Assembly: GCA_977017575.1 (NCBI GenBank)
Contig: CDRNVI010000012.1
Span: 310,001-374,000, forward strand
From: Paramoeba atlantica
Taxonomy: Eukaryota > Protista > Discosea
Length of the DNA: 64,000 nucleotides
Direction: 5' to 3'
Below, in pieces: positions 1,047-31,336 of this stretch. The notes below the pieces were generated by a model. It was not told the origin of the DNA. It ran no database searches and was given only the letters and a program-made list of their open reading frames with translations. Positions within the stretch are counted from its first letter, which is position 1. Each line of letters starts with the position of its first letter. Position numbers and translations under genes: made by a program.

Positions 1047-3701
1047 TTAATGTGACGAAAATTTGGGAAGCTCCTGTTCAAAAGAAATGGTCTTGAGAGA
1101 GCTTCGAATTGTACATTTATCAGAATCTGAGAGTTGGCCTCGACGCTCCTTCAGCACAGCACAAATTGAGCGAAGGGGACTGCACCAGGTATCATAATCT
1201 GAAAGAGCGGAGTAAGATGCAATGCGCGAAAGCAACAAAACGAGTTCGGAATTGCTCAGGTGTTTCGCTTTACGACTGGCAGATTGCAGCAAAATGAACA
1301 AAATACTCGGTTTTAAAGGAGTGTCAAGATTCAACAAGTCAAGCTGAGAGGTGAATGGCACGGAATCAATAGGAAATTCCGTTGCGGATGATTCTTTACT
1401 GCCCGGCACCTTACTTCCAAGTGTATGAAGAATAATATTCTGATGAGTGGTGCCCCAAGAAGAGCTATCAATACAGGCCAGGTTAGTAAAGAAAACGACC
1501 AATGCCGAACCGGTCGCACGTGCATAGAGATTACGAGCCTGTTTATAGAGCTTCTCAAAAAGTTGGATATCCTTGCTATGGAATTGTCGAAGAGCTTTTA
1601 TGAGGTTAGCTAATTCGCGGGCTCGCATTGAAAAACTTAGCAACAGCATTCGTTTCTCAACTGCGACAAGAATTTTAGCTGGAGCCCGAATACTTAAATG
1701 CTCAAAGCCATGTGCGACAGCATTGAGGTCGTGCGCGCTTGCGTTAGCGATATTACCTACTGTTAAATGTCGTGTTATAACTGCGCGCATTTCTGGAGGA
1801 GTCGTGTCATACTTTACGAAAACGCTCAACACTACCCCAGCGACGCGAACACTGGTATCGTTAACCGGCCTGGTTGCGAGACTACGAAGTAGGTGTGCAA
1901 TCACAGGATGCTTCAAGAAGCCGAACTCAACTGCCGCGCTCAACAAGCAGCAACCCTCTCTAGAACTAAAAAGGGTGAATTCCATAGCTCTGTCAAATGC
2001 GCGCTGCAAAACAGCGCTCTCCGTGCTCTCCGAACATCGGAGGGCACTGAGATACAAAGATAATTCTCGTACATTGAATTGCTTTACGTGCGGGTCAAGG
2101 GTGTAAAATGCAACTTCTAGGGATTCCGAAGCAAAATTCAGTGTGTTCATACAGCTTAGTATATCACACCATTGCCTAATATTTTTCATGTCCGTTCGTT
2201 CCACGGAAGATGCGTGTCGTAACGCTTTCATTATTTCTGATTGCACGGTAGGGGAAAGAGTAAATTTATGTATGACTGCAATTTTTAGCAATGTATGCAA
2301 TTGACCGCGCGTGAGCGCTCGACTTACACAGCTTTCCAATCCCCTCTTAACAGTATCCACCACCTTGTTAGAAAATGAACCGTGGTTCCATGTCAAACTT
2401 GCTCCTGCAATTTTCATAATGTGTTCTGTTGTAGCGAATCCTTCAATCGCCAACTTTTCAAAATGGGACAAAACGTCATCAAAGTTTTTGGGAGCAAAGT
2501 CACCCATCAAGATTAAAGTAATAAAATTGACGCATTGTTCTGCCTGAAATTCGTTCGACAATTTCTTATTAACTGGAGATGCCGCTAGATAAAGTTTGTT
2601 ATAGGCGATTTTGTTATGTGTCACAGTTTTGTGAAGGAGCTTTAAACCTCGAAGAGCTGAAGTAGGATCCAGCTGATCAGCATTCCGAACGCACCATTGC
2701 AAAAGTTTTGGGGCAAGAGCGGAAACTTGTTCTTTATCAGTGTGCATTTCACAAACACCCAAAAGAACCTCAATTCCTGACGATGACATTTCATTTATGG
2801 AGTCAGTATGTTCCAAAAACGTTTCTATGATCGGTTGTACTAAGAAGCGTTTATGCGCAAATTCAAAGTACAGCGCAATCTCCAAGACTTGCATACCCTC
2901 GATTTCGTCTAGTTGTTTCAAAGGTAGATTGTTCATGGACCTGAAACAGAGAATTCGCGACGACTGATGATACTGTAGATTCCATTTTCGGAGAGTTGAA
3001 AGTAACTGAAGAAGTTTTTGGCGACCTACCTTCCAAAAAGGCGTTTTCCAACACTCTTTTTCGACGAGTTCTACAATGCTTTTAATTGGTGGATAAAATC
3101 TTTCGTACTCAACATTTAATTGCAAAGCGAGTTTTGAGGACAGATACAGGGCGTATATCAGTTGATCTACAGTAAAGGAACTAGCTCCCGCTGCAATTGT
3201 ATCCAATACCCTGCGAAAACTTTCTGGTCTCCATTTTATTTCCAAGCGTTCCAAAAGTACAAGACTGAAATAACAATCCCTGTTGTTGAGCATTCCAATA
3301 TGCTCCTCCAGGAAGTCAAGAGCGCTATGAAACAATTTATGTGACCTTGAACCTAGTTTATATAGTTCAAACAACGATAATCGAACCGACGTCGGACTTA
3401 ATTGAGTATAACGTTCTCTAAACGTTGCTTCAAGAATTGACAAAAGTTCTGAGTCGTATATATTTAAACGAAAACAACTATTAATGATGCCAACCAACTG
3501 ATTGCAGTTGCATTCGGGAACAGCACGCGTTAAGCGTGGAACCATAAGCACCGTTGTCTTATCCAGTTCATCCTTTACTTGTAGGTCAACTTTTTGCTTT
3601 AAATCAGCAAGACTAACAATCAATGTCACACAAGAAATTGCGTTAAACTCAATTTCTGCACGTCGACACCTGCGCAGCAAATTGTATAGCGGATGCACCA
3701 T
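1047..3701 (-). CDS. 884-aa alpha-helical repeat protein (FASTK/HPR/OPR-like), probably mitochondrial RNA-binding
   Basis: Long ORF with degenerate helix-pair repeats (e.g. MRARELANLIKALRQFHSKDIQLFEKL) and an Arg-rich N-terminus (LLRRCRRA). Confidence 0.7.
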   Translation of the reverse strand: MVHPLYNLLRRCRRAEIEFNAISCVTLIVSLADLKQKVDLQVKDELDKTTVLMVPRLTRAVPECNCNQLVGIINSCFRLNIYDSELLSILEATFRERYTQLSPTSVRLSLFELYKLGSRSHKLFHSALDFLEEHIGMLNNRDCYFSLVLLERLEIKWRPESFRRVLDTIAAGASSFTVDQLIYALYLSSKLALQLNVEYERFYPPIKSIVELVEKECWKTPFWKVGRQKLLQLLSTLRKWNLQYHQSSRILCFRSMNNLPLKQLDEIEGMQVLEIALYFEFAHKRFLVQPIIETFLEHTDSINEMSSSGIEVLLGVCEMHTDKEQVSALAPKLLQWCVRNADQLDPTSALRGLKLLHKTVTHNKIAYNKLYLAASPVNKKLSNEFQAEQCVNFITLILMGDFAPKNFDDVLSHFEKLAIEGFATTEHIMKIAGASLTWNHGSFSNKVVDTVKRGLESCVSRALTRGQLHTLLKIAVIHKFTLSPTVQSEIMKALRHASSVERTDMKNIRQWCDILSCMNTLNFASESLEVAFYTLDPHVKQFNVRELSLYLSALRCSESTESAVLQRAFDRAMEFTLFSSREGCCLLSAAVEFGFLKHPVIAHLLRSLATRPVNDTSVRVAGVVLSVFVKYDTTPPEMRAVITRHLTVGNIANASAHDLNAVAHGFEHLSIRAPAKILVAVEKRMLLLSFSMRARELANLIKALRQFHSKDIQLFEKLYKQARNLYARATGSALVVFFTNLACIDSSSWGTTHQNIILHTLGSKVPGSKESSATEFPIDSVPFTSQLDLLNLDTPLKPSILFILLQSASRKAKHLSNSELVLLLSRIASYSALSDYDTWCSPLRSICAVLKERRGQLSDSDKCTIRSSLKTISFEQELPKFSSH

Positions 3702-4164
3702 TTAAAGTTTAAGAGCCGAATTTCAGTGACGGAAGCAGAATGCCTGATAGCATATCTTACTAAAGTCTAATAGCTTATCGTACTAAAGCTTAAAGTTTTG
3801 GTTCGTTTTACCACAGAACAATATTTAATAGTATTGGATCTGGAATGTGCTTTCAAATTTATACAACAAAAGTTACGTAACGTACGCTTTGCTAATTTGT
3901 CGATGTAAATTGTAGGTGCCTATTAAAGTTTAGGTGCTCCTTAAATATTGCTATATGTCCAGTTTCTGAGATGACTGTCCATTTCACTGTAACTTTGCCT
4001 CGTCAGTCACCCAACTTTATTATTCGTCTCGTTTGCGTTGTAAAATGGAAACAGAATACAGGATCATTTTGTATCTGTTAATCAACTTAAAAGCAAAAAT
4101 ATTTCGCATTGGAACTTACATGTATGTTATAAAAAAAGAACAATAAGGAATAGAGATCGCTACG

Positions 4165-4407
4165 TCAAGTCGAGTACAAACTAGAAAAGGCCACAATAGG
4201 AACAGCAAATCCGGCTGAATACAAAAAATATGAGTTCTCCTTCCAGATACACATGTGTAGCTTTTCCCTGCTCAGCAAGCAATTAGAATGCGCGTAAAAT
4301 TTTGTTCCCGGCTCAAGGGAAATTCTTTCAATTTTATTCACTACATTCGTATATGGTTTATATCCGGAAAGAGACTTGTGGCTTAAAAGGCGTCGAGTTA
4401 AATTCAT
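4165..4407 (-). CDS. Small (80 aa) putative mitochondrial single-pass membrane protein
   Basis: ATG at 4407 gives MNLTRRLLSHK (presequence-like) and a hydrophobic C-terminus (YFLYSAGFAVPIVAFSSLYST). On the cluster strand. Confidence 0.5.
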   Translation of the reverse strand: MNLTRRLLSHKSLSGYKPYTNVVNKIERISLEPGTKFYAHSNCLLSREKLHMCIWKENSYFLYSAGFAVPIVAFSSLYST

Positions 4408-4832
4408 TTTGCAAGTGAATAATGGCTGGTCAAAGCAAAATACATCCAAAAAAAGATGCAACGTATATTAGGGTGCAGGTAAAGAGGTACTTACGGTAGA
4501 ATTATTCTAGCTTTTTCTATTCGAAAGTCTAGGTCTCTTTAAAACGATATTGACGACGAATGTGCTATATTATATACAAGTTGTATTCAATAAACTTATG
4601 TGCAGCCAGATTTATGCATAATTATCCAATACACGTGGCGAGAAGCAACATGTACACCCTTTACAAGTCTTGTATTTCGTACGATTTTGGAAATTAACCA
4701 AAACAATATTTAACGTCGTTTAATAATCGTATAAAATCGTGTGATACACGGATGCGATGTACATTTATCGTGAGTTCCACACGATCGACGCGAACGTACA
4801 GGAGGCGTGCGGAACAAACTGCTAAAAAAATA

Positions 4833-7568
4833 TTACGCCGTGTACATAGTTTGCGCATTCCCAGTAATGGCTAACTTGCTTATCTCCGCTTTTGCGTGTA
4901 CTAACTCTGCCAATTCATCATCAGATGTTTTTAGGTTGTGTTTCACTTGTGGACGGTTCTGCATATAGGAATCTATGACACTTAAGCATGCCTCACGTAC
5001 CTTTTCCTCAGAATCAGGTTGATCTCTTATGTAAGAAATTCCATTAGCAATTACCTGCTTAATCCCTGACACGGTAAGGTCTCTGACTTTTCCCAATTGT
5101 CGTACAGACCTCAAGAATATTGCTTCTAGAAAAGAGGAAAAATTTTCTTTGTATAGAGTGAGGCTGTGTTGTGCTACGTATCGTATAAGAAACAATAGCT
5201 CACGTTGGCTTTTCAAACTCTCGCAATTCATTTCCAGGCTACGCCAAATTATTTTTTGAAGATTTGAGCACACCATATTTAGCTCCATTGTATCCCCAAG
5301 GAGACTTACGCACTCCTCGGCATTTAAGCTTCGGGCAATTTTTTTCATAAGTTCTTTGGCAATAACATTGTTTAATTCCGAATCATAACCCTTCGCGTAG
5401 CTCAGAGTGTTACACAATGTGTGTAGCGCTCTCACAAGTTCAACCACAGTAAAACTATGCAAATACGCCTTTAAGAACTTGATAATTAGCTGCGAAATAT
5501 TGAGTGAGAGTTTACATTCTAGTGTATCTCCCAGCAAAGTTATGAAGCGAGCAATGTGGGGTAGCCCAATTCGATTGATAGCGGTCTTCCGACAGGTCAA
5601 AAGCTCCTCTAAAAAACATTCCAAACCAGAATTAGATTTCAAAGTAAGGTTGCCCTCCTTAAAAGCATTAAGCGCATACATGACGCATTCTACATCTTGT
5701 CTAGAGAAGCTGTTCGATTTAGCCAATAGTGTCATTTCCGAAAGTAACTGTTCCCACAACGCATTAAATATTTTGGAGTGGTACAAATGAAGTCTATTCG
5801 CTGCTCGAAAGACGCAAGCAATCTTTCGCGGACTTTTCCACGGTTCTTTTGATTTCACTAAATCCTTTAAAACACTGTAGCACAACTCTATATGTTCCAC
5901 ATCGTCAACTGCAGCCAGGGAGTTGAAAAGACGAACTAACGTTTTACGACGTTTCGGTACTCGTGTGTATACGTTGGCTAATTTGTAAATTAAACGCTTC
6001 GTTACATCATCCGTTGGCGCTATTTGGCTGTATGAGGAGATGAGGTCCACCAGAGTCACAGCAGAGAATTGAGCCAACATAGAATACACCTCGTCTCGGA
6101 CCAAATGAAAAACGCCTTGATCGCTAACTTCCATTGTAGCATAAAAACACATGATGTTGCGAAGAAGGTTCTGCTTTAACGCATACTGTAATTCATTGTC
6201 CTTCCGAAGAAACGAAGTCGCGTGTCTCACCAGAACGGGACCCATCTTCCTTATTTCCGAAACGGAAGGATAGGGGAGCAAAGAAAACAGAAGATGAACG
6301 GTGTGCTCTACTGGTAAAAGATCGACTTTAGTTTCCAACAAGGTTGCAAAGCGGCCGACAAGTTTGTTGTCCAAACACTGAACACTGCTAAGAATGTCAA
6401 TAACTTGGCATATTTTTTCAGGTTTGTACGATTCGCTATGCTGAGATAAACGAGATCGTAGAGATAAGTAAAACTCGGCTGAGAAACGGGATGCGGCATT
6501 CCGAGCTTTTGACAAAGTTGATACGATTTGTAAAGCATCTTGAGGAGATCCACTAGACTCATGTGTAGCTATTCGATCTGCTAGTGCAAGAGCATCTGGA
6601 GTTACACCGTTTGAACAGTTAAATGTCATCTCAAGAAAAAACAGTTGCGAGGTTTCTCGGAACGTTCTTGTAATGTTTCGTTCAATTATTCTGCGTAGTA
6701 GATCGTGAAGCAAAACAAACACATCTGCGTCAGACCACACTGATATGGGAACCCACAACAGACATGCTAGGATTTCGGAATCCTTGATAATGCTCTGTTG
6801 TCGTTGCATTTGTTGTAGCCAAGACGCCCAATGCTCTGTAAACACTGAGGTTTGATAAGTGTGTAGAATGAAACCCATTTGAATACATTCTTTCACGTTA
6901 ACATTTTCCCAAAGCATACCCCCGTGGAGAAAATAACCTAGAATATGCCTCACTTTGGGGTTCTCGTCGCCGTGACCAAGCTTCGCGAAGGAGTATAACA
7001 ACGTCAACTTAGCTTGATTGTCCATTTCGTCATGAAATTCTACAAAAATAGAATTGCTGAAATTCTGAAGCTTCGCTTGGTTAATTGGAGGCTCGATGGA
7101 GCATAAAAAACGAAGTATCTCTGCGTACCGCCTACCATCAGGCGAATCAAGGCTTTCAATTTCAGAGAGAGTAAGTTTCCGTTCGTGAAGGAGCTCATTC
7201 GCACGTCGGGCAAGCTGCATGACTATTTCCCGCGTGCCTTCATAGTGTCGGAAGTGATGAATAGTACTGAGAACATTATGAACCTCTGTCACCTGAAATT
7301 TTTCTAGAGCAGAAGGCACGCATGACAAGAGAAGGTTCAACAGCTCTGGAGTGTACTGGTTCGTAAGGCGCACTGATTGAAAGAGCGAGAGCGCATGCGA
7401 AGGCCGAGGCGGATTCTGCAAATAGCTGTCACATGCAGCCCGCTCAATCTCTCTGTTCATCTCGTGCAGGGATAGAGCTGCGTGAAGAATGTCGTTCATG
7501 TCATCGCCTTTCGCAAATGGTGCCCTTGCGGCACGTTTGAAAAGGTGCGACAAGCATGCCGCTACCAT
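4833..7568 (-). CDS. 911-aa alpha-helical repeat protein (FASTK/HPR/OPR-like)
   Basis: Repeats such as FQVTEVHNVLSTIHHF, FSAVTLVDLISSYSQI and FSRQDVECVMYALNAF. Presequence-like N-terminus (LFKRAARA). Confidence 0.7.
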   Translation of the reverse strand: MVAACLSHLFKRAARAPFAKGDDMNDILHAALSLHEMNREIERAACDSYLQNPPRPSHALSLFQSVRLTNQYTPELLNLLLSCVPSALEKFQVTEVHNVLSTIHHFRHYEGTREIVMQLARRANELLHERKLTLSEIESLDSPDGRRYAEILRFLCSIEPPINQAKLQNFSNSIFVEFHDEMDNQAKLTLLYSFAKLGHGDENPKVRHILGYFLHGGMLWENVNVKECIQMGFILHTYQTSVFTEHWASWLQQMQRQQSIIKDSEILACLLWVPISVWSDADVFVLLHDLLRRIIERNITRTFRETSQLFFLEMTFNCSNGVTPDALALADRIATHESSGSPQDALQIVSTLSKARNAASRFSAEFYLSLRSRLSQHSESYKPEKICQVIDILSSVQCLDNKLVGRFATLLETKVDLLPVEHTVHLLFSLLPYPSVSEIRKMGPVLVRHATSFLRKDNELQYALKQNLLRNIMCFYATMEVSDQGVFHLVRDEVYSMLAQFSAVTLVDLISSYSQIAPTDDVTKRLIYKLANVYTRVPKRRKTLVRLFNSLAAVDDVEHIELCYSVLKDLVKSKEPWKSPRKIACVFRAANRLHLYHSKIFNALWEQLLSEMTLLAKSNSFSRQDVECVMYALNAFKEGNLTLKSNSGLECFLEELLTCRKTAINRIGLPHIARFITLLGDTLECKLSLNISQLIIKFLKAYLHSFTVVELVRALHTLCNTLSYAKGYDSELNNVIAKELMKKIARSLNAEECVSLLGDTMELNMVCSNLQKIIWRSLEMNCESLKSQRELLFLIRYVAQHSLTLYKENFSSFLEAIFLRSVRQLGKVRDLTVSGIKQVIANGISYIRDQPDSEEKVREACLSVIDSYMQNRPQVKHNLKTSDDELAELVHAKAEISKLAITGNAQTMYTA

Positions 7569-7662
7569 TTACTAAACGATAAAAGGTCGCAAAAATATGA
7601 CAAAATGGAATTTAAAAAAGTGTCGACGCTATAACCCTACGGATGTACTTGAAGCACCATAC

Positions 7663-7762
7663 ACCCCCCAGTAACAGGCCCCCTCAGCAACATTTTATTA
7701 AATTTAATATTTAATATTAAATAATAATTAATATTTAATATTAATTTACATTACTGGGGGGT
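7663..7762. mobile_element. 100-bp AT-rich MITE-like element with ACCC termini
   Basis: Perfect 12-bp TIR ACCCCCCAGTAA / TTACTGGGGGGT, flanks ATAC / ATAG, and a mostly AT-rich interior. Confidence 0.5.
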
Positions 7763-7886
7763 ATAGGGTAGTATGAGAAGCAACAATAAAGTCCAATAAA
7801 GTTGAGAGTTAACAGCTAAACCCCACTTCGAGACTTTAACAGTAGATCCAGCGATCCGCTTGTTTTGAAATTTGTACGCTCTTCAA

Positions 7887-10541
7887 TTAAATCTTACCTG
7901 CTTTGCGAAGTTGTGAAACTAAGGCTTTTGCACTTTCCTTCTCTGGGGGTAATAAGCAGTGACGTCGCATGTGAAGCTCATTGATAAGCTCTTGTAAAAC
8001 GATTCCTGGTACATCACCTAAGTTAATATTGTAACAGTCATGTAAAATTTGTAAAATATCGGACACGTGCACGGTGCTCACAGGAAACATGTGAAGCTTT
8101 CGCACAATGCTGTGGAACACTCGATGGGGGTCGTTGAGTACCCTCCACTCTAATAATGTAGAGTAGGAAGCTAGCATAAAAAACGTCATGCGTCCCGTAG
8201 ATTCGTTTTGCTCAAGTCTATGGCACACCACCTCAACAAGTTTTGCAATGAGAGACCCCTGCGGCATGTTGGCAAGTGTCATTGAATATAAAAAAGTAGA
8301 ACCACACAGCGTGTTAAGTGAATCAGCAGACAGCGCAACATTTCTAAAAATGGCGCGCAGTTCTGCGGAAAAGCCTCCCAGTTTTGCCATTGTTAAGGAA
8401 ATTAGAGCTAAATCTTGTGCGTCACGTTCCTTGTACGCACAATTCTTTAGAAGTATGCGTGTCGCTTCACGAAGGTACTGAATGGAAAGCTCTGTTTCGT
8501 AGTTTGCCGTAGGCTTGGAGGAAAATTTGGGAGAGTCTCTTCCATGAGCTTCGGAGAGCGACGTGTGGGTGTAGCGCACTAAATTGGCTATTGCAATCAC
8601 AGCTCGCGCATTCTGTGATGCAGTTAGCATGCCTGAGCATTGTACTACCCGTTCCACTAGATTCCGTACGATTTCGGCAGGTACTAAAGCAAATGGGTAT
8701 CGAGCTACAGAAAGCAAAACGCTTGCTACTGTGCGGTGCTCCGTGGGTCCCACAAGATAGGTATCTGCGAGGGAGAGAAAAGCCTCTCGATAGTTGATAT
8801 GAAGCCGTAGCATTGCGTTGAGCGCTGCAGCGCAATCCATAGGCCCCGGTCGCTTCTCGCTAAGTTCTTTTACCAGTTTACTTGCGAGCTCGTGATTGAC
8901 AATATCCGCGCGGGCTGCGGATACCAGTGCCGTGAGAACTCGACCTGTGTCCGCTGCGGAGAGTCTCTCTTTTTGCATGTCGAGCGCGGAGAATAAAACT
9001 TGCCATGCGGCTTCTCTAGGCGGGAGACCGATTTCCGTAAAGGCCAAAAAGATACCCGTAAGAGCGGGAGCCGACAGCTGGAAAGGGTTGTTCTCGAATA
9101 CGGGACACAGTGCGACCAACAGATGACGTGCGGTATTATCAAAAATTTTAATAAACCTGACGAAAGTGAAGAAGTCTTGAACGTTGACTGTGCGCAGAAG
9201 AGAAAATGATTTTTCCGCGTCTGCAAGGAGCTCTTGCATGCGAGCTATGGCGATTTTAGCCAAAGCTGGAGTTTTTGGGTGTGACATGTACTTAATAAGG
9301 GCCAAACAATATCGGGCAAGATCGGAAAACGAAGAAAGAGAGATTACGTCTCCTAAGTTGTCAGATAATATTCCAAATGTCGCTTCATCCTTAACACCTA
9401 CGGCAGTAACTGCTTCAAGGGTGCTCTCAATATCTTGCGAAGTAATCACTTCTTCCGTTCCGCGACGTATTTTTTGCCACATATCTCTTGTGAGAGTACG
9501 ATTCCCCACATAATTTCGCGTAAAAGGGTTTAAAATAAAAATAACTTTCGGAAGCGAAAGGTCAGGATCGGAACGAATACGACTCAAGAGCATGCGGTCG
9601 ACAGCTTCGTCGCTCACGCCCAAAGCAATAGCGGAGGCAAGGGTTGTGATACAATCTGAGACTTCCCAAACTTCGCTCTCCATCTCTAGCAACTTGAGGT
9701 ACAAATTATTCATTACCGCAACGTCAATGCGTAGTCGAGCCCCGCAAAACATCGCCTCCACTATACAAACGAAAGGAAGTTTCTTGTACTTACGAATGAC
9801 CTCAACGGACATCAAGTAAAACTTATGCTGCAATTCAGGTTCGGAGCTTGCAAATGGGATGGCGCGCAACACGATGAGTAAACCTTTGCTTCGGAGTTTA
9901 CTAAACATGGCGCTGGCAGAAGCAAGTTCTTGAAACGCTTGGACGAAATGATCACTTGTTGTGCAGCGTGTTTCGGTCAAGGCCCGAATCTGACGTAGCA
10001 TGAGACCGAAATCGTTCGGTACGGGGCGCAAAGGCCATAATGCGTCGACGACCTGCGCAGCCCATGGTGTCGCTCTTATAGGCTTAATTTTCCCCAAATA
10101 TGTAAGAATTTTCTCTATATCAGAGGGCGAAAACAGTGCGACACTGGTGATCACATGTCGCAGAGTTTGTTCATATACGGTGCTAGAAACAAAACCAGGA
10201 AGGTGGACAAACGCGTACAGGAGATTGAGAAGTTCCTTCGTATCGATACAAGGGAACAATGCGAGCTCTGATTCAACCCTGTGTTGAATATTTTGAAGCA
10301 GGACACTATGAGTGGCATACATGTTAGCACATGCAACGAGAACATTAACACAATCGGAGCATGTAAAAGGCGGATGTTTCAGCAGAGCACTTTCCACCCT
10401 CCGGGATTCTGCAATGGATATTTCTTCCATTTGAGCCAAGTCACAGAAGGCAGAGCGCAGGTGTTGCAGCGTTAAAACGTTAGGTTGTAGTGCCTGACGG
10501 CGCAGCATTAGAAAAACCGCGGCGCCGCACCGCTGTGACAT
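7887..10541 (-). CDS. 884-aa alpha-helical repeat protein (FASTK/HPR/OPR-like)
   Basis: Repeats such as IDTKELLNLLYAFVHLP, FSPSDIEKILTYLGKIK and LSAADTGRVLTALVSAA. Presequence-like N-terminus (LMLRRQAL). Confidence 0.7.
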   Translation of the reverse strand: MSQRCGAAVFLMLRRQALQPNVLTLQHLRSAFCDLAQMEEISIAESRRVESALLKHPPFTCSDCVNVLVACANMYATHSVLLQNIQHRVESELALFPCIDTKELLNLLYAFVHLPGFVSSTVYEQTLRHVITSVALFSPSDIEKILTYLGKIKPIRATPWAAQVVDALWPLRPVPNDFGLMLRQIRALTETRCTTSDHFVQAFQELASASAMFSKLRSKGLLIVLRAIPFASSEPELQHKFYLMSVEVIRKYKKLPFVCIVEAMFCGARLRIDVAVMNNLYLKLLEMESEVWEVSDCITTLASAIALGVSDEAVDRMLLSRIRSDPDLSLPKVIFILNPFTRNYVGNRTLTRDMWQKIRRGTEEVITSQDIESTLEAVTAVGVKDEATFGILSDNLGDVISLSSFSDLARYCLALIKYMSHPKTPALAKIAIARMQELLADAEKSFSLLRTVNVQDFFTFVRFIKIFDNTARHLLVALCPVFENNPFQLSAPALTGIFLAFTEIGLPPREAAWQVLFSALDMQKERLSAADTGRVLTALVSAARADIVNHELASKLVKELSEKRPGPMDCAAALNAMLRLHINYREAFLSLADTYLVGPTEHRTVASVLLSVARYPFALVPAEIVRNLVERVVQCSGMLTASQNARAVIAIANLVRYTHTSLSEAHGRDSPKFSSKPTANYETELSIQYLREATRILLKNCAYKERDAQDLALISLTMAKLGGFSAELRAIFRNVALSADSLNTLCGSTFLYSMTLANMPQGSLIAKLVEVVCHRLEQNESTGRMTFFMLASYSTLLEWRVLNDPHRVFHSIVRKLHMFPVSTVHVSDILQILHDCYNINLGDVPGIVLQELINELHMRRHCLLPPEKESAKALVSQLRKAGKI

Positions 10542-17095: not shown

Positions 17096-18316
17096 TCAAG
17101 CAGCATCCGCAGGTGGCTTTGTGACAGGCACGCTCCGGTACCGCAACCGTCGTTGACAGCGTGAAATCAAAACGGTGATATTTCTTCGCATTGTGGGAAC
17201 TCGGTCATATTCATATTCCATCGCACGATATTGCTCGGACTTTGGCACCTCCCTTCGAGATACGCGTGGGATGCGGCACTTCACATTTCTGTGCGTCTTC
17301 ATCCGCTCATAATGAATCTGGTACAAGTCCTCAGTGGCAATTCGCTCCTTGGGATCCAGTCGCAACATCATCCGAAGCAGCTCGCACTCGTATCGTGTGG
17401 CCGTTTTCTCCAACTGTTGGACTCTCTCCGCAACTCGTTTGCGGTCCCGTTCCAGGTGACACTCCTTTCGGTTGAACAACGTGCGGCCGGATATCATCCT
17501 CGCCAGGACACACCCGAGTGCCCAAATATCAGAGGCCCCACTGAAGTATCCCTGCTCCGTCTCTGGGGCACGATATGGGTACGTACTGACATACTTTCCC
17601 ACCGTATGCCGGGAGTTCTCCTCCCACATACGGGAGGTGCCAAAATCTACCAGTTTCACCTGCGAGAGGTCACGCTGCAGCACAATGTTCTCCGGCTTAA
17701 TATCCCGATGAAGCACCCCATGGTGGTGCATGTGACGTAACCCACACAACAATTGACCAAACAGCACCAGTCGCGTCTCCTCCGGCAACGCCTCACCCCC
17801 ACATTTCGTCGCACTCTGCGCCCGTACCCTCTCATTCAAAAACAAATGCAACGAGCACTCCATCCGTGGCAGCACCAGGTACACCCCGTTATCCCCCTCC
17901 CAGGCCTGAATCAGCTCCATCACATTGGGGTGCCGCCTATCCGGGGCGGTGAAGTAATACAGCACGCTGAGCTCCCGCATCGAGGCCTCACAATCCGCGG
18001 CCTCGTTGAGGAGCTCCTGTTTCACGACCACCTCGGTGCCGTCACGACGACGGGTCGCGGTGAAGACGACACCAAAGGCCCCGTCGTCTCCGAGGTGGGT
18101 GAAATGGTCGTAGGCGTTCGAGGGGTAGACCACACGACGGGTGCCGTGGGGGACGGGGATGTGGGTGACGGAGAAGGGGGCGTGTTGAGGATCTGCGGCA
18201 CGCCCGGTGAGACTCTCGCAGGCCGCAGAGTGGGGGGTGGAGTACGTGCTGGAGGGGGCACCCCCGCGACTGGAGGTGGCGGGGGTGGAGCAGAGACTAC
18301 GGGGTCGTTTGCGCAT
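17096..18316 (-). CDS. Ser/Thr protein kinase (CMGC/MAPK-like, divergent)
   Basis: LGDDGAFGVV, VVVKQE, HRDIKPEN, DFG, STYPYRAPE and SDIWALGC. Confidence 0.92.
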   Translation of the reverse strand: MRKRPRSLCSTPATSSRGGAPSSTYSTPHSAACESLTGRAADPQHAPFSVTHIPVPHGTRRVVYPSNAYDHFTHLGDDGAFGVVFTATRRRDGTEVVVKQELLNEAADCEASMRELSVLYYFTAPDRRHPNVMELIQAWEGDNGVYLVLPRMECSLHLFLNERVRAQSATKCGGEALPEETRLVLFGQLLCGLRHMHHHGVLHRDIKPENIVLQRDLSQVKLVDFGTSRMWEENSRHTVGKYVSTYPYRAPETEQGYFSGASDIWALGCVLARMISGRTLFNRKECHLERDRKRVAERVQQLEKTATRYECELLRMMLRLDPKERIATEDLYQIHYERMKTHRNVKCRIPRVSRREVPKSEQYRAMEYEYDRVPTMRRNITVLISRCQRRLRYRSVPVTKPPADAA

Positions 18317-18526
18317 GGCAGCAGGAGGAGGGGGAGGACAAGGAAAATGAGGTTTTTAGTGTGGGTGGGGTTGTGTGAGATAAAGGGAGGGAAAGAGAAG
18401 GAAAAATATAGAGGAGGTTGAGGAAAGATAGGTTATGAAAGGATTGGGATTACGCGTGGGGGAGATGATAAAGATGAGATAAGAAGCATAATCTAAGGAG
18501 TTTTTTTCAAAGGAAAATACTACTCC

Positions 18527-18600
18527 TCTCATTAATTTCTATAAATATAAATTATAACAAAAAATAAAATTTATATTAACATTTATAGAAATTAATGAGA
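18527..18600. repeat. AT-rich hairpin with perfect 20-bp arms
   Basis: TCTCATTAATTTCTATAAAT (18527-18546) / ATTTATAGAAATTAATGAGA (18581-18600). Confidence 0.8.
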
Positions 18601-18914
18601 ATGGTTAGGCAAAAAGTCTTGATAAATGATCCTGCCTGATGGAAAAACGCTATTTTTCTGCGATAAGCTTTCGCGGAACGTGAGATCCAAGGCCCTTGTC
18701 GGAAGTGAGGGCCAAAATTTTCTGCGGTGTTCTCCCCTCTATACTAGCTTTTCCTGTTTGTTTTCTTCAAAAAATATTCTTTTGAAAAACTATAATTTTT
18801 CTCGGAAAAATTAGGAATGGCGTTTATAGAAATTAGAGAGAAGCGGAGTATCCCCCTCCGTTTTAGCCCACCTCGTTTTCCGTTAAAAGCAGGGGTCTGA
18901 AAATATATTATATA

Positions 18915-20060
18915 CAGGGGGGTGCACGAAAATATGGGGGGGGTCAAAATTCTTATAACTTGGCCAATTTTGGAAAATCATAGCGTATTCGAGAGCTCTC
19001 GCAGAGTTACGTGTCATGTGCTAATGCGTTTCCCGCACTTTTTAATTTTGTAGAAAAATTAAAAAAATCATGCACTTTTTCAAAGTGCAGAATTCTGCAG
19101 TTTTTTGAATAAAATACTTTTTTTTTGTGAATTTATCGACTTTTTTGATCCTAATACACTACTATGCCCCAGAAAAGGTCATATTCGAATAATAAAAAGG
19201 TGCAGAAACGGAGTAGATTTTGCTATTCGCTTCGTGGGCAACTTAAAGCATCTCATAGGATACATTTGGTTAAAAAAATTGAGGAAACTTATTCTTTTTC
19301 AGCTGTCGCCAAGATGTTTAGGTGTCACGAGGACACTGTCAAGCGTTGGATGCAGCGTTACGAAGAGACTGGTGAGGTCGATAGGTCTCCCTATAAAACT
19401 CGCCAATCTCCTGTAATATCTGACCCTCTGTTGAAGCGAGCACTCAATCCTATTGATCAAGCAACAAGGAATGAAACCTATGATATCGCTTCTTGGGATC
19501 ACCTTCTGAACCTTCTTGTAGGAGAGGGTTTCAGATGCTCCCGTCGCGCTCTGATACGTTCCCTCAAGAAGGAGGGTATCATATCCCGCACAGTCCCCCG
19601 AAACCCTGCACTCACAAAGGAGCACAAAAGGAAACGAGTAGAGCTATGCCAGGAGTTGGCAACATGGACCCCTGCTCAGCTTGAGGCTATCGTCTGGACA
19701 GAGGAGAAAAAATTTACTTGCGGGGGCAGCCGCAAGATTACCTACCTTTGCCGTCGTTCAGACCTCCCAAAGGAGCACGCCGGTAAGCGGGAGAACTTTA
19801 AAGAGTGTTCCAAAGCGCGTGAAAATTGTGTTGGAGAAAAAAGGTGGAAATTGTGGATACTAACATTTTTTTACCAGAAAAAAGACTTGCAGTTGCCATA
19901 TTTACGGTATTCAGGAGAATGCATATACCTGGAAACTACGTAAAACGTAATATCACATGACACGTAACTCTGCGAGAGCTCTCGAATGCGCTATTATTTT
20001 CCAAAATTGGCCGAGTTATAAGAATTTTGACCCCCCCCCATAATTTCGTGCGCCCCCCAG
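18915..20060 (+). mobile_element. Tc1/mariner element, internally deleted
   Basis: About 107-bp TIRs (18915-19020 / 19954-20060), TA flanks, and an enclosed transposase ORF. Confidence 0.9.
19164..19943 (+). pseudogene. Truncated Tc1-family transposase (HTH domains, DDE domain lost)
   Basis: HTH (FSAVAKMFRCHEDTVKRWMQRYEETG), CSRRALIRSLKKEG, NPALTKEHKRKR and IVWTEEKKF (Tc1 WTDEKKF with D-to-E). The ORF ends at the right TIR. Confidence 0.85.
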
Positions 20061-20064
20061 TATA

Positions 20065-20823
20065 CAGGGGGGATCACCAATATCGGGACACCCGACATTT
20101 TTGTGTCATGTGTCCGTTTCACCTCATTTTTGTTGCAAAAGAGAGATCTCGACGCGAATATAATCGGAACGACATTTTGCGCCTATTTAAACACACCTAA
20201 AAAGTAGGGTGTGCACGACAAAAACGATTTTTTTCAAAATTTGCACATTTGAAAATGTGGATTAAAATGTCTTAAAAAGCATTGAAAAAGTTATTTAGTA
20301 TGAAATAACCCCTCCGTTACACTTTCGTAACTCTTCTAACCGTTTTGGGAGGCTCTTCAGAGTCTTCTCTAGGATATCCCGCTTTTCGGTTAGGAGATAT
20401 TCAATAGCCTTGGGTATATAACACTGCTCTTTCCGCAATTCATCATACATGCTGTTTCCCTCATAGACTTGCCTTGATGCACTTCGTGCGCGCTCACAAT
20501 CCGTGTGCCGTAGGATGCATGCTCGGGGGATACATGACGGAAGTTTAATCTATGTCGTTTTCTCATTTGGAACTTAATAAAAGAGAATTGTATCCTTTAA
20601 TAGACAATTTTAACGGGATTTGCACAATTTTTACATAAATTTGCATATTTTTTGGAGATTTGTTTTATTTTTTTTATACCATTTTTTACAAGTGCGTTTA
20701 AATAGGCGCAAAATGTCGTTCCGATCATATTCGCGTCGAGATCTCTCTTTTGCAACAAAAATCAGGTGAAACAGACCCACGGCCCAAAAATGGGAGGTGT
20801 CCCGATATTGGTGATCCCCCCTG
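20065..20823. mobile_element. Tc1/mariner-type MITE, 759 bp
   Basis: 132-bp imperfect TIRs starting CAGGGGGGATCACCAATATCGGGACACC, TA flanks on both sides, no ORF. Confidence 0.9.
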
Positions 20824-20987
20824 TATATTTATAGTATTTGAAAAAAAATATAGTACTATTATAGTACTATTTATAGTACTATATTATAGTACTATTTATA
20901 GTATTATAAATCTATAAAAAACTATAACAGGAAAAAGTGATCAAAAACGTTTTGATGCTCTTTTTTAGCACGAATGGCACCAAGTAC

Positions 20988-21073
20988 AAAATCAATTATG
21001 ACAGGCTTAATCAAGTTTCTTATGTTTCGCAAAATCAATTATGACAGGCTTAATCAAGTTTCTTATGTTTCGC
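20988..21073. repeat. Perfect 2 x 43-bp tandem duplication inside the hAT-like element
   Basis: AAAATCAATTATGACAGGCTTAATCAAGTTTCTTATGTTTCGC occurs twice in tandem. Confidence 0.9.
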
Positions 21074-21695
21074 GGCAGAAAACATAGTTTTCAGTTTTGT
21101 GATTGTGCTTCTTCCACCAAAGGAGAAAAAAGAAGCTACAAGGACTCTCTTTTGAGGGAAAAACTCATCCAAACCCGCCAAAAATCCTTCAAAAAATTAT
21201 AGATTTTTATATATAGTATTTGAAAAATTATAATACTATGTAGTACTATAATTATCGATTTTGTAAATTTTCAGACCCCTGGTTAAAAGTGTGCTTCAAC
21301 GGGGGGGGTCTGAATCACGACACAATAAAAAAAATCTGCGCCTCAACTCCATGTGCGCTTTAACGGGGGTCTGATCAGGTGCGCTTAAGGGGAGGGGGAC
21401 AAAAATTTACATAAATTGTGCATTCAGACTGAATCACTGCTTGTTTGTTAAGTTAATGTATAAGGTCTTACACCGGAAGTAGATTTACCAAATCATTATC
21501 ATTTTTCCTTGGATTAAATTTCTGCTTCGAAGTCTGTGTGTTCTACAAAGTTTGTACAAAGTTGGGCTGACATTGAGAACAGCAACAACCGACACCGTGA
21601 CCCGTAGCCCCCCAATTTAAAATTACTAGTAGTAAGTAAATTAAAAGTAATTAATAATGTTTACTACTAATTAGTAATAATACTAGCGAAACGAA

Positions 21696-22661
21696 CTAAT
21701 ACCTTTGGTCTGCAAGTGCGCGACTCTCCGCATCAATACGAGTCTCTTGAATATAACCTGACGCTTGGGCGTCATGACCCAATACTTTAATTTGTGTATT
21801 CCTGACAAACATTCCTCGAGGAAGAATTTCAATCTCACCCTGCATAGCCACATTATCAGATAAATTGTAGTAATTTATTTCAGGCAGTCGTGTCAGATCG
21901 GGGCTGCCACTGAATGCATTGCCGCTAATGTCCAATGATTCAAGCGTTCTTGGAAGTTTGCTGAAGCATAAGTCACCTGAAAACTTATTCATGCTTAAAC
22001 TCAGTGCTTTTATACTCGTAGGAAGCTGCGTTAAATCTATGGACCCCGAAAGGCTATTCGAGTCAAGGGACAGCCGTTCAAGATGTGTAGGAAGCATTGC
22101 CAGACATACTTCTCCCGTAAATTGATTGCTCGACAAATTTGTCGATAATAGAGCTCTGGGAAGTGATGCCAAGTCTAGTGCCCCGAAAAACTTGTTCTGG
22201 TTAAGATTAAAGTATTCCAATGTAATTGGTAAAACATGGAGCAACGCAGGACCTGAAAACTTATTTACTTCTACACAAAAACTGGAAAGCGTGTGCGGCA
22301 AATGTCTGAGGTTTAACTCCCCGTGAAGACCTTGAGCCCACCATCTAATCTCTTTTACAACGCCTTGCGCGTCACATTTTACACCAAACCAGTTACAGAT
22401 TCCCGTTTTTGAATTCCAAGATTTGTGGGGATTTACTACCTTTGCGACAAGTCGTAAAAGTACGTGTTCCGGTGGGAGTACCATACTATTGACTTTTGCA
22501 CCAACTGTTCTGGTACTGTAGTTTTGCTGTGAGGCACGGTTGCCAAACATACCCACTTTGAAAGCAGCGCTCAGACTTGATTTCTTTCCTTGTTTCTTCG
22601 GAATGTCGGCCAGGCGAATACCGGTGCTTGAAGAAAAGCATTGAACCGCAAAAAAACTCAT
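21696..22661 (-). CDS. Leucine-rich repeat protein (LPxxLxxL type)
   Basis: Cap ICNWFGVKC, with repeats such as LPTHLERLSLDSNSLSGSIDL. Confidence 0.9.
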   Translation of the reverse strand: MSFFAVQCFSSSTGIRLADIPKKQGKKSSLSAAFKVGMFGNRASQQNYSTRTVGAKVNSMVLPPEHVLLRLVAKVVNPHKSWNSKTGICNWFGVKCDAQGVVKEIRWWAQGLHGELNLRHLPHTLSSFCVEVNKFSGPALLHVLPITLEYFNLNQNKFFGALDLASLPRALLSTNLSSNQFTGEVCLAMLPTHLERLSLDSNSLSGSIDLTQLPTSIKALSLSMNKFSGDLCFSKLPRTLESLDISGNAFSGSPDLTRLPEINYYNLSDNVAMQGEIEILPRGMFVRNTQIKVLGHDAQASGYIQETRIDAESRALADQRY

Positions 22662-24069: not shown

Positions 24070-24696
24070 GAGGTTCACCGGCACTATAAATGTAGGTTGA
24101 AAACAAGTAAAATTTGTTTGAACAATCATGCCCAAAAGGACTCAAGAAAAAGTTTTTGATCTTTCGTTGATCTCTTTTCTTATTTATTTTTTTAGCTTAC
24201 TTACCAGACCACACGTTTTTTCGATCAGATGTGCCTCCTAACTCTAATGGTAAGACCCCAAAAAACGTCCGAAATATGGGGAGAATACGAAATGTGGGGA
24301 GAATCGGGTATTTGTACCAAAAGTTGGATTATTCTGGATCGCTTCGCAATTTTTTCCTTTTTAGTCTCTTCATTAAATGCGGAAGCAGTTCTCAACGCGA
24401 AGGGGGCAGCCGTGGTGGCTTCCAAGAGGGTTCAAACTGGATGGGAGTGTCTGGGAGCGCCTGGGAGCGCACCTTATCCTTTTTACAGGTCACCAATACC
24501 AAGTAGACCAATGTAATAGACCAATGTAGTATATCCTGGGCGGTCCATTGAGTATTCCAAGCATTGAAATATAAGTTGGAACGTCATGAGTATGAGTGGA
24601 AACGTTTTAAAAAGTCACGTAAAAGTTTTTTCGAGCGGAAAAAAATCATCAGAAAAAAATGGATTTTAACCTACATTTATAGTGCCGGTTACCCTC
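24070..24696. mobile_element. 627-bp MITE with GAG...CTC termini (Sola-like)
   Basis: Perfect 22-bp TIR core ACCGGCACTATAAATGTAGGTT (24077-24098 / 24668-24689), extending with two mismatches to GAGG / CCTC, with T-runs on both flanks. Confidence 0.7.
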
Positions 24697-24843: not shown

Positions 24844-25813
24844 ACCCCGTTCCGGGTTAATGTACCTCTAGCTCGCTATTGTACCGGGGGGGGGTGCAAT
24901 AAGTGGGAACGCTTGGTTTTATTGTACCCCCCTGCGTAAAAGAGGGCCCTTTTTTGCCTTTCTACCGATTTCTTTTCAAAATTGGTTACAAATTTACCAT
25001 TTTTACCAACGAAGGCATGCTTTTTTTGCCAACCTTTTTTTTGCACTAGTTTCGTTATTTTTCGGAATTTTTATTGTGCCTGTAGCTAGGTATTGTAGCT
25101 AGTTATAGAGAGAGATACTACTCCCTCGCTACCATAGGTTAATTCGTCGTGCCCGATTTGTGGCCCGATTTCGTGCCCGATATCGTTTGAGGTGTGTTTT
25201 CGAAAAAAATGTTTACAAAAAAATGTTGCCTCCCCACCAGGGTGATCGTAGTAAATTTTGAAACTTTGAAAAAAGAACTGAAAAAGTATGGGTGAAATAA
25301 AAAAAAATATATTTTTCCCAAATCAACTCCTAGACCGTTTTTTGAGAGTTTGGGGCCTGATATACGCTTTGGTTTCATTCGATATTTCTCCACCTTGTGC
25401 TGGTAATACACCTACAAAGGTCAAGCGTTACCTGGAAGTGTGTGACACGCAAGGCCGTAGAGGAATGAGGAGGCGCAAGGCAAAAAGGGAGAAGGCGGAG
25501 CCTTCTGTCTTTTTGCCGCGGCGACGACGACTTCCTCACGTGGGAAGCTGTAAAGCGCCCTACGCAGCATGTTCCCATGGTTATGTAACCCAGGCTAAAG
25601 TGGACGAGGGAGATACTAAAGGTACCTTTTGAAATCCACCACAAAACTGGAACGGTATCTCCCGGTTTGTAGAGCATTCTGATGTGACAAAAGGGTCCGT
25701 AACGGGAGATACCGTTCCAGTTTTGTGGTGGATTTCAAAAGGTACCTTTAGTATCTCCCTCGTCCACTTTAGCCTGGGTTGTACCGGGGGAGTACATTAA
25801 CCCGGACGGGGGT
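24844..25813. mobile_element. 970-bp TIR element with ACCC termini and TTAA flanks
   Basis: TIR ACCCCGTTCCGGGTTAATGTAC / GTACATTAACCCGGACGGGGGT, with TTAA at 24840-24843 and 25814-25817. Confidence 0.75.
25588..25779. mobile_element. 192-bp foldback MITE with perfect 77-bp arms, nested in the previous element
   Basis: Arms 25588-25664 and 25703-25779 are exact reverse complements around a 38-nt loop, with TGTA directly repeated on both sides. Confidence 0.85.
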
Positions 25814-30013: not shown

Positions 30014-31058
30014 CAGGGGCGGGCACGAAAATGTGGGGGGGGTCAAAAGTAAGGTTTTTGGATAGTCAAAATTCTGCAGTTAGGTCATTTTTTCACTATT
30101 TTCTTCTTCTTTCCGTCTTTACTTTTGTTCTCAGAAAGGAGAATTTTCGAAAGTACGATACAGAAACGTCGTAGCCGTTGCCAGAGTCCTTGTACACAAA
30201 AAATGAATGCCTCTCACATGATCCTCTTAGTAAGAAATTCGTCAACGATCCATGAATGGCGGAGATGTTGAAGGCAACTTCCTATAATGAGAGCTATGAT
30301 TGGCTCCTGTCCAACCCAAGCTACATGTAGATACCACCGCACTTATTTGAGATAGCCGTCAAGCCCTACCTTGGGGTGCATCATCCAAGGATTTCTGAAG
30401 CTCTGATGTGTCCTGGAAGCCGAGCTTCAATTGATTCAAACACTGCGTTAACTCACATCCCCGGATGCGCAAGGCACATGTTTCAATGCCGCAGCGAAAC
30501 GTGGTACGGGTGTGCGGGTCTAAGGCTGAAATGTGTGTCTTTCACAACGTTTCTTGAAACTCCTCACCGTTTTCTGGACCGTTGCAGAGTGAGTTTGTTT
30601 AAATTTAAGGAAAGACTCCTCGATAGCGGCTTCTAATTGTTATCGTTTTAGGGTCGAAGAAGATATTTGTCTGTATCGATCAGGTTGCGCTGTGGCAGAG
30701 TGCGATCCCGTGCGCTCGTACTCCGCCATAAAAATGTTTTATTAAAAAGCATGCGGTGACTCTCTTTCACGGGGGGATCTTTCACGGGAGGGGGATGACT
30801 AAGTTCTATGGTTCCGTACACCGCGGGAAGTCCACGAACGAGCGCGCTTTTGGTACATTTTCTGGTAAAAAATGAAATTTTTGCAGGTGGAAAAAGCGAA
30901 ATATGGTATCAAAAGATATATCAGGCTAAAATTTTGAAGTAAAACATGGCGACTAAAACATACAACTGTGTGAGAGCTATCCAAAGCTGTATTACTTTCC
31001 AAAATTGGATAAGTTTCACGAATTTAAGACCCCTCTCACCTTTAGACCCGCACCCCTG
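30014..31058. mobile_element. Degenerate relative of the Tc1-type element
   Basis: Left end TA-CAGGGGCGGGCACGAAAATGTGGGGGGGGTCAAAA closely resembles the 18915 TIR. A diverged right end ...GACCCGCACCCCTG-TA lies at 31058. Confidence 0.55.
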
Positions 31059-31336
31059 TATGTTGACTAAGTTTCTGTATGATCTTAGCATGAGGGCAGA
31101 CATCCCGTGCAAAAGAGAATCTCGTTCCCTCAGTGCATGGACATGTCTCACATTCGGAAATCTAATCGACTATAACTATCAGCGTTGTAGAAACTTTCTT
31201 GTACCTGAAGGACCCCCCCTAATACTATCTTCTCTGATACTGAGTGCAATGCAATGAGAACAGAAGGATCCACTTCATGATTTCAGACTTTGAGCACGCC
31301 TAAAAAACGTACCAACGAATGCGCGTAAATTTAGAA

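Follow-up and report, generated by a model that had tools for sequence, protein, structure and literature searches.

What are the elements nested within one another at positions 18882–21289 of this DNA, in which order did they arrive, and which enzyme moved the outermost of them? The DNA is a 64-kb stretch of contig CDRNVI010000012.1 (C12 below), from the assembly deposited for Paramoeba atlantica (GCA_977017575.1). We refer to the whole stretch as the window, and positions are window positions unless a contig or locus is named; the genome searched was the 45.7-Mb assembly. An earlier note had described 15-bp terminal inverted repeats (TIRs) and a perfect 8-bp target-site duplication (TSD) enclosing two TA-flanked elements that are split by TATA, and direct reading of the letters confirmed this arrangement. 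We consider it quite probable that the nest is made up of three dead class II (cut-and-paste) elements lying in an intergenic spacer of a kinetoplastid polycistronic unit, namely an outer hAT-like miniature inverted-repeat transposable element (MITE) and two Tc1-like elements, A and B, inserted into it. None of the three is able to move unaided.

Anatomy of the nest and order of insertion

The nest comprises the following features.

18882–18889, no strand: left TSD, GTTAAAAG, read directly; same letters as 21282–21289
18890–18914, plus strand: outer hAT-like MITE, left part, closing with TA at 18913–14, the target of element A
18890–18904: left TIR of the outer MITE, CAGGGGTCTGAAAAT, 15 bp
18915–20060, plus strand: element A, non-autonomous and Tc1-like, with TA at 18913–14 and 20061–62
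19164–19943, plus strand: open frame of element A, 259 amino acids (aa), N-terminal helix-turn-helix (HTH) DNA-binding half of a transposase only
20063–20064, no strand: TA targeted by element B, duplicated at 20824–25
20065–20823, minus strand: element B, a Tc1-type MITE of 759 bp, with TA at 20063–64 and 20824–25
20417–20418, no strand: empty TA site inside element B; the allele on contig C2 has an insertion here
20826–21281, plus strand: right body of the outer MITE, with palindromes, a tandem duplication and the right TIR
21267–21281: right TIR of the outer MITE, exact reverse complement of CAGGGGTCTGAAAAT, 15/15 matched
21282–21289, no strand: right TSD, GTTAAAAG, read directly

The outer MITE spans 18890–21281, is non-coding, and is 483 bp long once A and B are removed; the list of open reading frames (ORFs) contains none of transposase length within it. 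The palindromic 8-mer TAGTACTA occurs four times at 20851–20894 and once at 21241–21248, all subterminal, so that the outer MITE holds five of the six occurrences in the window. The right body also carries a 43-bp tandem duplication (20987–21072). Elements A and B are separated by TATA only, which amounts to one TA from each element.

Excision in silico of A with one TA, and of B with one TA, restored the 483-bp outer MITE, the first 45 nt of which align without gaps to uninterrupted copies elsewhere in the genome. Because the restored MITE is colinear with these copies, the outer element is older than A and B, which is the order that the earlier note had read from the nesting; A and B thus each entered an element already in place, by simple insertion with duplication of TA. 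The alternative, that the outer ends are never found without A and B, was ruled out by an uninterrupted copy of 402 bp at L067:1001–1402. The same TATATA stretch (element positions ~21–27) is the site of interruption in several further copies of the outer MITE. Tc1 elements favor TA within AT-rich runs, and the clustering of the interruptions fits this preference.

The history that we envisage has three steps. A non-coding MITE of ~0.48 kb would have inserted first, duplicating 8 bp of its target. Two Tc1-like non-autonomous elements would then have entered, independently of each other, two neighboring TAs in the TA-rich left subterminal region of this MITE, each duplicating its TA. Finally, once the haplotypes had diverged, a third TA-targeting MITE would have inserted into element B, solely on the haplotype not represented by the window. 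As for the supply of transposase, an intact 369-aa gene of family A is present at least once elsewhere in the genome, and a source for the outer MITE was not found there.

The outer MITE as a genome-wide family

All three elements belong to families with many copies in the genome, and the TSDs are consistent. The 15-mer TIR, allowing up to one mismatch, has 48 matches, compared with 0 for the reversed control; the body of the outer MITE has 51 matches, and element B has 110. At 402–483 bp, the outer element has the features of a MITE, being small, non-coding, bounded by TIRs and a TSD, and present in many copies. The TSD sample comprised all full copies with both ends readable (n = 6). A flank search established that the loci L064 and L065 represent a single insertion, seen on a pair of haplotigs, and we therefore counted six independent events. 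Their 8-bp TSDs are GTTAAAAG (window and C2 allele), ATAGAAAG, TTAAAAAT, CTTACATT, GTTAATTT and ATTTCTAT, of which the last has a 1-nt indel and the other five are perfect. In all six copies the TSD directly adjoins the termini CAG…CTG.

Compared with the hAT target pattern nTnnnnAn, the TSDs have T at position 2 in 6/6 and A at position 7 in 4/6, a fit of 10/12 overall with a probability of ~4e-4 (our own binomial calculation with a base frequency of 32%, on six AT-rich targets and with a test picked after seeing the data). Independent copies are 85–95% alike (median 89%). This likeness, together with the presence of the insertion on both haplotypes, indicates that the outer family is not very young. 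A clean empty allele was not found with the L067 flanks, and an Rfam scan of the window gave no match.

Several loci were considered as possible autonomous copies and rejected. The long TIR pairs L061 and L069 (3.6 and 4.5 kb) are one locus on two contigs with the same flanks, and represent the MITE with nested elements, namely a TA-flanked MITE and a CATACC-ended hAT with a 6-bp TSD. A third long pair, L062, holds Tc1-like inserts. L063 (C104:15316–18936, on a 30-kb contig) is not a single element; two identical MITE ends, whose flanks are reverse complements (T8 / A8), face each other, and the locus is either an inverted duplication or an assembly foldback. In L080, what adjoins the solo end is not a transposase ORF but a JmjC gene of the host. 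A single metagenome match to the 21-nt terminal pattern (n = 1) lies inside coding-looking DNA and was dismissed as chance.

The larger element nested in the L061/L069 copy was recorded in its own right. Located at L061:2140–4533 and in L069 (contigs C30 and C56), it is 2.4–3.3 kb long and has CATACCTTCCG termini and the 6-bp TSD TAATTA. It contains a 488-aa frame with the hAT C-x-x-H motif, followed downstream by a frame with Asp at the position of the catalytic Glu; neither frame has a Pfam match at E < 0.01.

Element A and its Tc1-like family

Element A has TIRs of ~127 nt (91% matched). It is 94–96% identical to the 1.57-kb copies of its family and ~420 bp shorter, with the gap at query 883/879, and by this alignment is an internal-deletion derivative of the 1.57-kb Tc1-like family. 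Its open frame corresponds to transposase residues 1–205; Glu replaces the first catalytic Asp, and the deletion has removed the other two catalytic residues, the second Asp and the Glu. The domains recognized in it are HTH_23 and HTH_28, along with a sub-threshold Tc3 HTH match.

A full-length copy of the family at L026:1751–2860 (C7:28084–29641) retains an intact open transposase frame of 369 aa, with HTH_23/28 and DDE_3 domains (the Pfam DDE_3 score is 25.4 bits, under the cut-off of 28.6). This transposase aligns with the catalytic domain of Sleeping Beauty (SB100X; 5cr4) with an E-value of 3.8e-7, and D175, D272 and E305 are all aligned. The spacing from D272 to E305 is 32 residues, rather than the 34 of the strict Tc1 DD34E signature, and in the literature searched no paper names a DD32E family. 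Among the Atlas matches, the best ten rows are all Tc1-like, each with DDE_3 and/or Tc3 HTH, and no relatives of the A transposase were found in viral contigs. For both A and B, the TA TSD and the HTH/DDE transposase that define the IS630-Tc1-mariner group are present, the transposase by way of full-length relatives. Of the autonomous hAT and DD34E transposases that the earlier note had suggested searching for, what emerged was this intact Tc1-like gene, but of DD32E type; a hAT gene with matching ends was not found in the genome.

Element B and a further insertion on the other haplotype

The TIRs of element B are 150 nt long and 89% matched (20065–20210 and 20678–20823). It has no ORF of transposase length; all that its minus strand retains of a transposase is a C-terminal remnant of 51 aa (20295–20450). 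Longer relatives of element B encode a transposase that is 32% identical to that of A (E = 2e-39), and since the parent transposase is only this similar, element B comes from a second Tc1-like family.

The same nest is present on contig C2, the flanks of which are 97.5–98.7% identical to the window, and we read C2, from this identity, as probably the other haplotype of C12. The C2 copy of element B holds a further TA-flanked MITE of ~755 bp, with ends CAGGGGTGTAAATTT and a duplicated TA, and the window has the exact empty site. Because this insertion is found on C2 only, TA-targeting elements moved after the haplotypes diverged. The recent activity claimed for the whole community of elements thus holds for the TA-targeting elements, by virtue of the haplotype-specific insertion, but not for the outer family, with its 85–95% likeness and its presence on both haplotypes.

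Host contig and genomic setting

The contig is kinetoplastid, as the earlier note had presumed. A full-length KMP-11 gene (PF03037) lies on the same contig at C12:196730–196999, 113 kb upstream of the window, with an E-value of 8e-43 and matches in 0/14 control genomes. Within the window, the minus strand carries 27/31 of the ORFs that reach 200 aa, and the eukaryotic housekeeping genes are intron-less (RPL5, EF1-gamma, ERCC1, ArfGAP, Ctf4/Mcl1 and others). It is the combination of KMP-11 on the same contig with a one-strand, intron-less gene cluster that leads us to a kinetoplastid host. A 21-mer resembling the kinetoplastid spliced leader at its 3′ end has three matches in the genome versus none in the control, and among solved structures RPL5 matches trypanosomatid ribosomes best, by a small margin.

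The nest lies in a spacer, with element A antisense to the transcription unit, and its surroundings are as follows.

17096–18316, minus strand: protein kinase gene, one flank of the nest
18317–18480, coding strand: pyrimidine-rich tract preceding the kinase gene; the nest is upstream of the tract
21696–22661, minus strand: leucine-rich repeat (LRR) gene, the other flank of the nest

A 335-bp structure adjoins the nest on the left (18517–18851). Its inverted ends measure 29 nt and enclose a foldback of 26 nt, and it is possibly an older MITE near which the outer element landed.

Which transposase drives the outer MITE

On its structure, we think it somewhat likely that the outer MITE is of hAT type, with its transposase supplied in trans. 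The hAT TIR terminus rule is 5′-YARNG. The 8-bp TSD (six insertions), the short 15-bp TIR with CAGGG, which agrees with YARNG although this terminus discriminates poorly in this genome, and, more tentatively, the nTnnnnAn-like target point to hAT. The genome also contains 35 matches to the hAT dimerization domain (PF05699), and none of these lies within 10 kb of any outer-MITE TIR match. Several observations weigh against a hAT assignment. No element with the ends of the outer MITE (CAGGGGTCTG) was found in the genome to encode any transposase, and neither the 35 hAT-domain matches nor the 150 listed Merlin matches include one inside a TIR pair; the long copies that were opened hold unrelated nested elements, and the opened solo end adjoins a host gene. 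Only six TSDs were sampled, all from AT-rich targets. In addition, CAGGGG also opens the TIRs of Tc1-like families in this genome, and the CAG end, which the earlier note had regarded as a hAT hallmark, is therefore weak evidence for hAT and not diagnostic here; because both begin with CAGGGG, only the 8-bp TSD sets the outer element apart from the Tc1-like families. The identification as hAT made by the earlier note accordingly stands as far as structure goes (TSD, termini and target bias), but a transposase gene with these ends was not found. Finally, Merlin is far commoner in this genome than hAT and also makes 8-bp TSDs.

This last point raises the possibility, which we regard as unlikely, that the outer MITE was mobilized by a Merlin (IS1595-type) transposase. 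Matches to DDE_Tnp_IS1595 number at least 150 in the genome, many of them in open frames of 320–450 aa, and no DNA transposon other than Merlin, which has TSDs of 8–9 bp, has been published for kinetoplastids (PMC8101967). However, the Merlin families described all begin with 5′-GG (PMC8101967), whereas the TSD of the outer MITE adjoins CAG…CTG in six copies. None of the listed Merlin matches lies inside an outer TIR pair, and outer TIR matches are co-located with neither hAT nor Merlin domains, save for one candidate: 3.95 kb downstream of the TIR match at C45:138194 (plus strand) there is a Merlin match. Slightly less likely again is an origin from another superfamily with 8-bp TSDs (P, MULE, Zisupton or Novosib), from a transposase that went unrecognized, or by cross-mobilization through the local hAT lineage with Asp in place of Glu. 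That the outer MITE is an orphan, and that a hAT of the Asp type is nested in another of its copies, would be in keeping with such an origin. The P-type terminus is CANRG, with which CAGGG agrees; the P-element transposase domain (PF12017) has 0 genome matches, which is a weak negative and does not prove absence. Cross-mobilization fits poorly with the nested Asp-type hAT, in which the termini are CATACC rather than CAGGGG and the TSD is 6 bp (TAATTA) rather than 8 bp.

It is likewise improbable, to about the same degree as Merlin, that the outer MITE was driven outside the rules of its family, by a Merlin accepting CAG…CTG ends, by an Asp-type hAT making 8- rather than 6-bp TSDs, or by an unrecognized class of transposase; if this were true, the outer family would be an orphan and its driver a novel variant. 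That the outer element is a chance combination of inverted and direct repeats, or the contig a non-kinetoplastid contaminant, is scarcely credible. These readings are refuted by the 48 TIR matches versus 0 in the control, the six independent 8-bp TSDs, the uninterrupted 402-bp copy, KMP-11 on the same contig, and an allelic contig that has the same nest in flanks 97.5–98.7% identical.

Other mobile or repeated DNA

Additional repeats were noted in the window and elsewhere in the genome. A Merlin tandem array with a period of 1692 bp occupies C21:145145–164000. At window positions 30505–31060 there is a TA-flanked MITE of 556 bp with TIRs of ~32 nt (78% matched, CAGGGGTGCGGGTCTAAAGG type), which represents another Tc1-type MITE family. 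A MITE-like element of 627 bp (24070–24696) has 33-nt TIRs beginning with GAGGTTCACCGG and T-rich flanks, in which T runs may mask a TSD, and a 194-bp foldback (25587–25780) has perfectly matched arms of 78 nt on either side of a 38-nt loop. Three tandem minus-strand ORFs of 884, 911 and 884 aa (1047–10541) have the appearance of a tandem gene array; the two of them that were scanned (1047–3701 and 4833–7568) gave no Pfam match.

Comparison with known systems

With hAT-derived MITEs and hAT elements of the Ac/Ds type, the outer MITE shares the 8-bp TSD, the 15-bp TIR with CAGGG, subterminal repeats, a lack of coding capacity, multiple copies and perhaps the nTnnnnAn-like target. It differs from hAT-derived MITEs in that a matching hAT transposase was not found in this genome, and in that its host belongs to the Kinetoplastea, for which no hAT has been published. 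Elements A and B resemble Tc1/Sleeping Beauty elements and Stowaway-like MITEs in their TA duplication, their CAG TIRs and their preferential integration into a TA of TATATA runs, and the full-length relatives of A share with Tc1/Sleeping Beauty a bipartite HTH and DDE transposase that aligns to SB100X. Unlike Tc1/Sleeping Beauty, with 34 residues between the last two catalytic positions, family A has 32 (D272–E305), and the copies in the window are deletion derivatives.

The earlier note had named Merlin as the only kind of DNA transposon reported from Bodo and Perkinsela, in agreement with the literature, in which only retrotransposons and degenerate Merlin are known from this group and Merlin is the first and only DNA transposon (PMC8101967). 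The Merlin elements of Bodo saltans and Perkinsela resemble the outer MITE in their kinetoplastid host, cut-and-paste mode, TSDs of 8–9 bp and toleration in polycistronic spacers. They differ in their termini, which are GG…CC in Merlin (PMC8101967) and CAG…CTG here; the TSD length fits Merlin, and the 5′-GG is absent. Moreover, the published Merlin copies of these two hosts are all degenerate and lack TIRs (Lopes et al., 2021; PMC8101967), whereas the present genome has at least 150 Merlin matches, together with Tc1-like and hAT-like families. The one report of Tc1 type that we found is of a Tc1-like gene in Bodo saltans virus (PMC11544213), and our scan of viral contigs did not find a link between it and the A transposase. 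Papers that connect Bodo saltans with mariner or hAT elements were not found.

As kinds of element, the three are ordinary (a hAT-like MITE, a deletion derivative of a Tc1-like element and a MITE derived from Tc1), and it is the lineage that is unusual. To our knowledge, trypanosomatid genomes have been described as carrying retroelements only. These 2.4 kb show that the genome of a kinetoplastid of the free-living type hosted at least two cut-and-paste systems beyond Merlin, one hAT-like with 8-bp TSDs and the other Tc1-like, and they raise the concrete question of which enzyme moves the orphan MITE with 8-bp TSDs. The order of nesting, taken together with the allelic presence or absence of insertions, provides datable markers of transposon history at the base of the parasite lineage.

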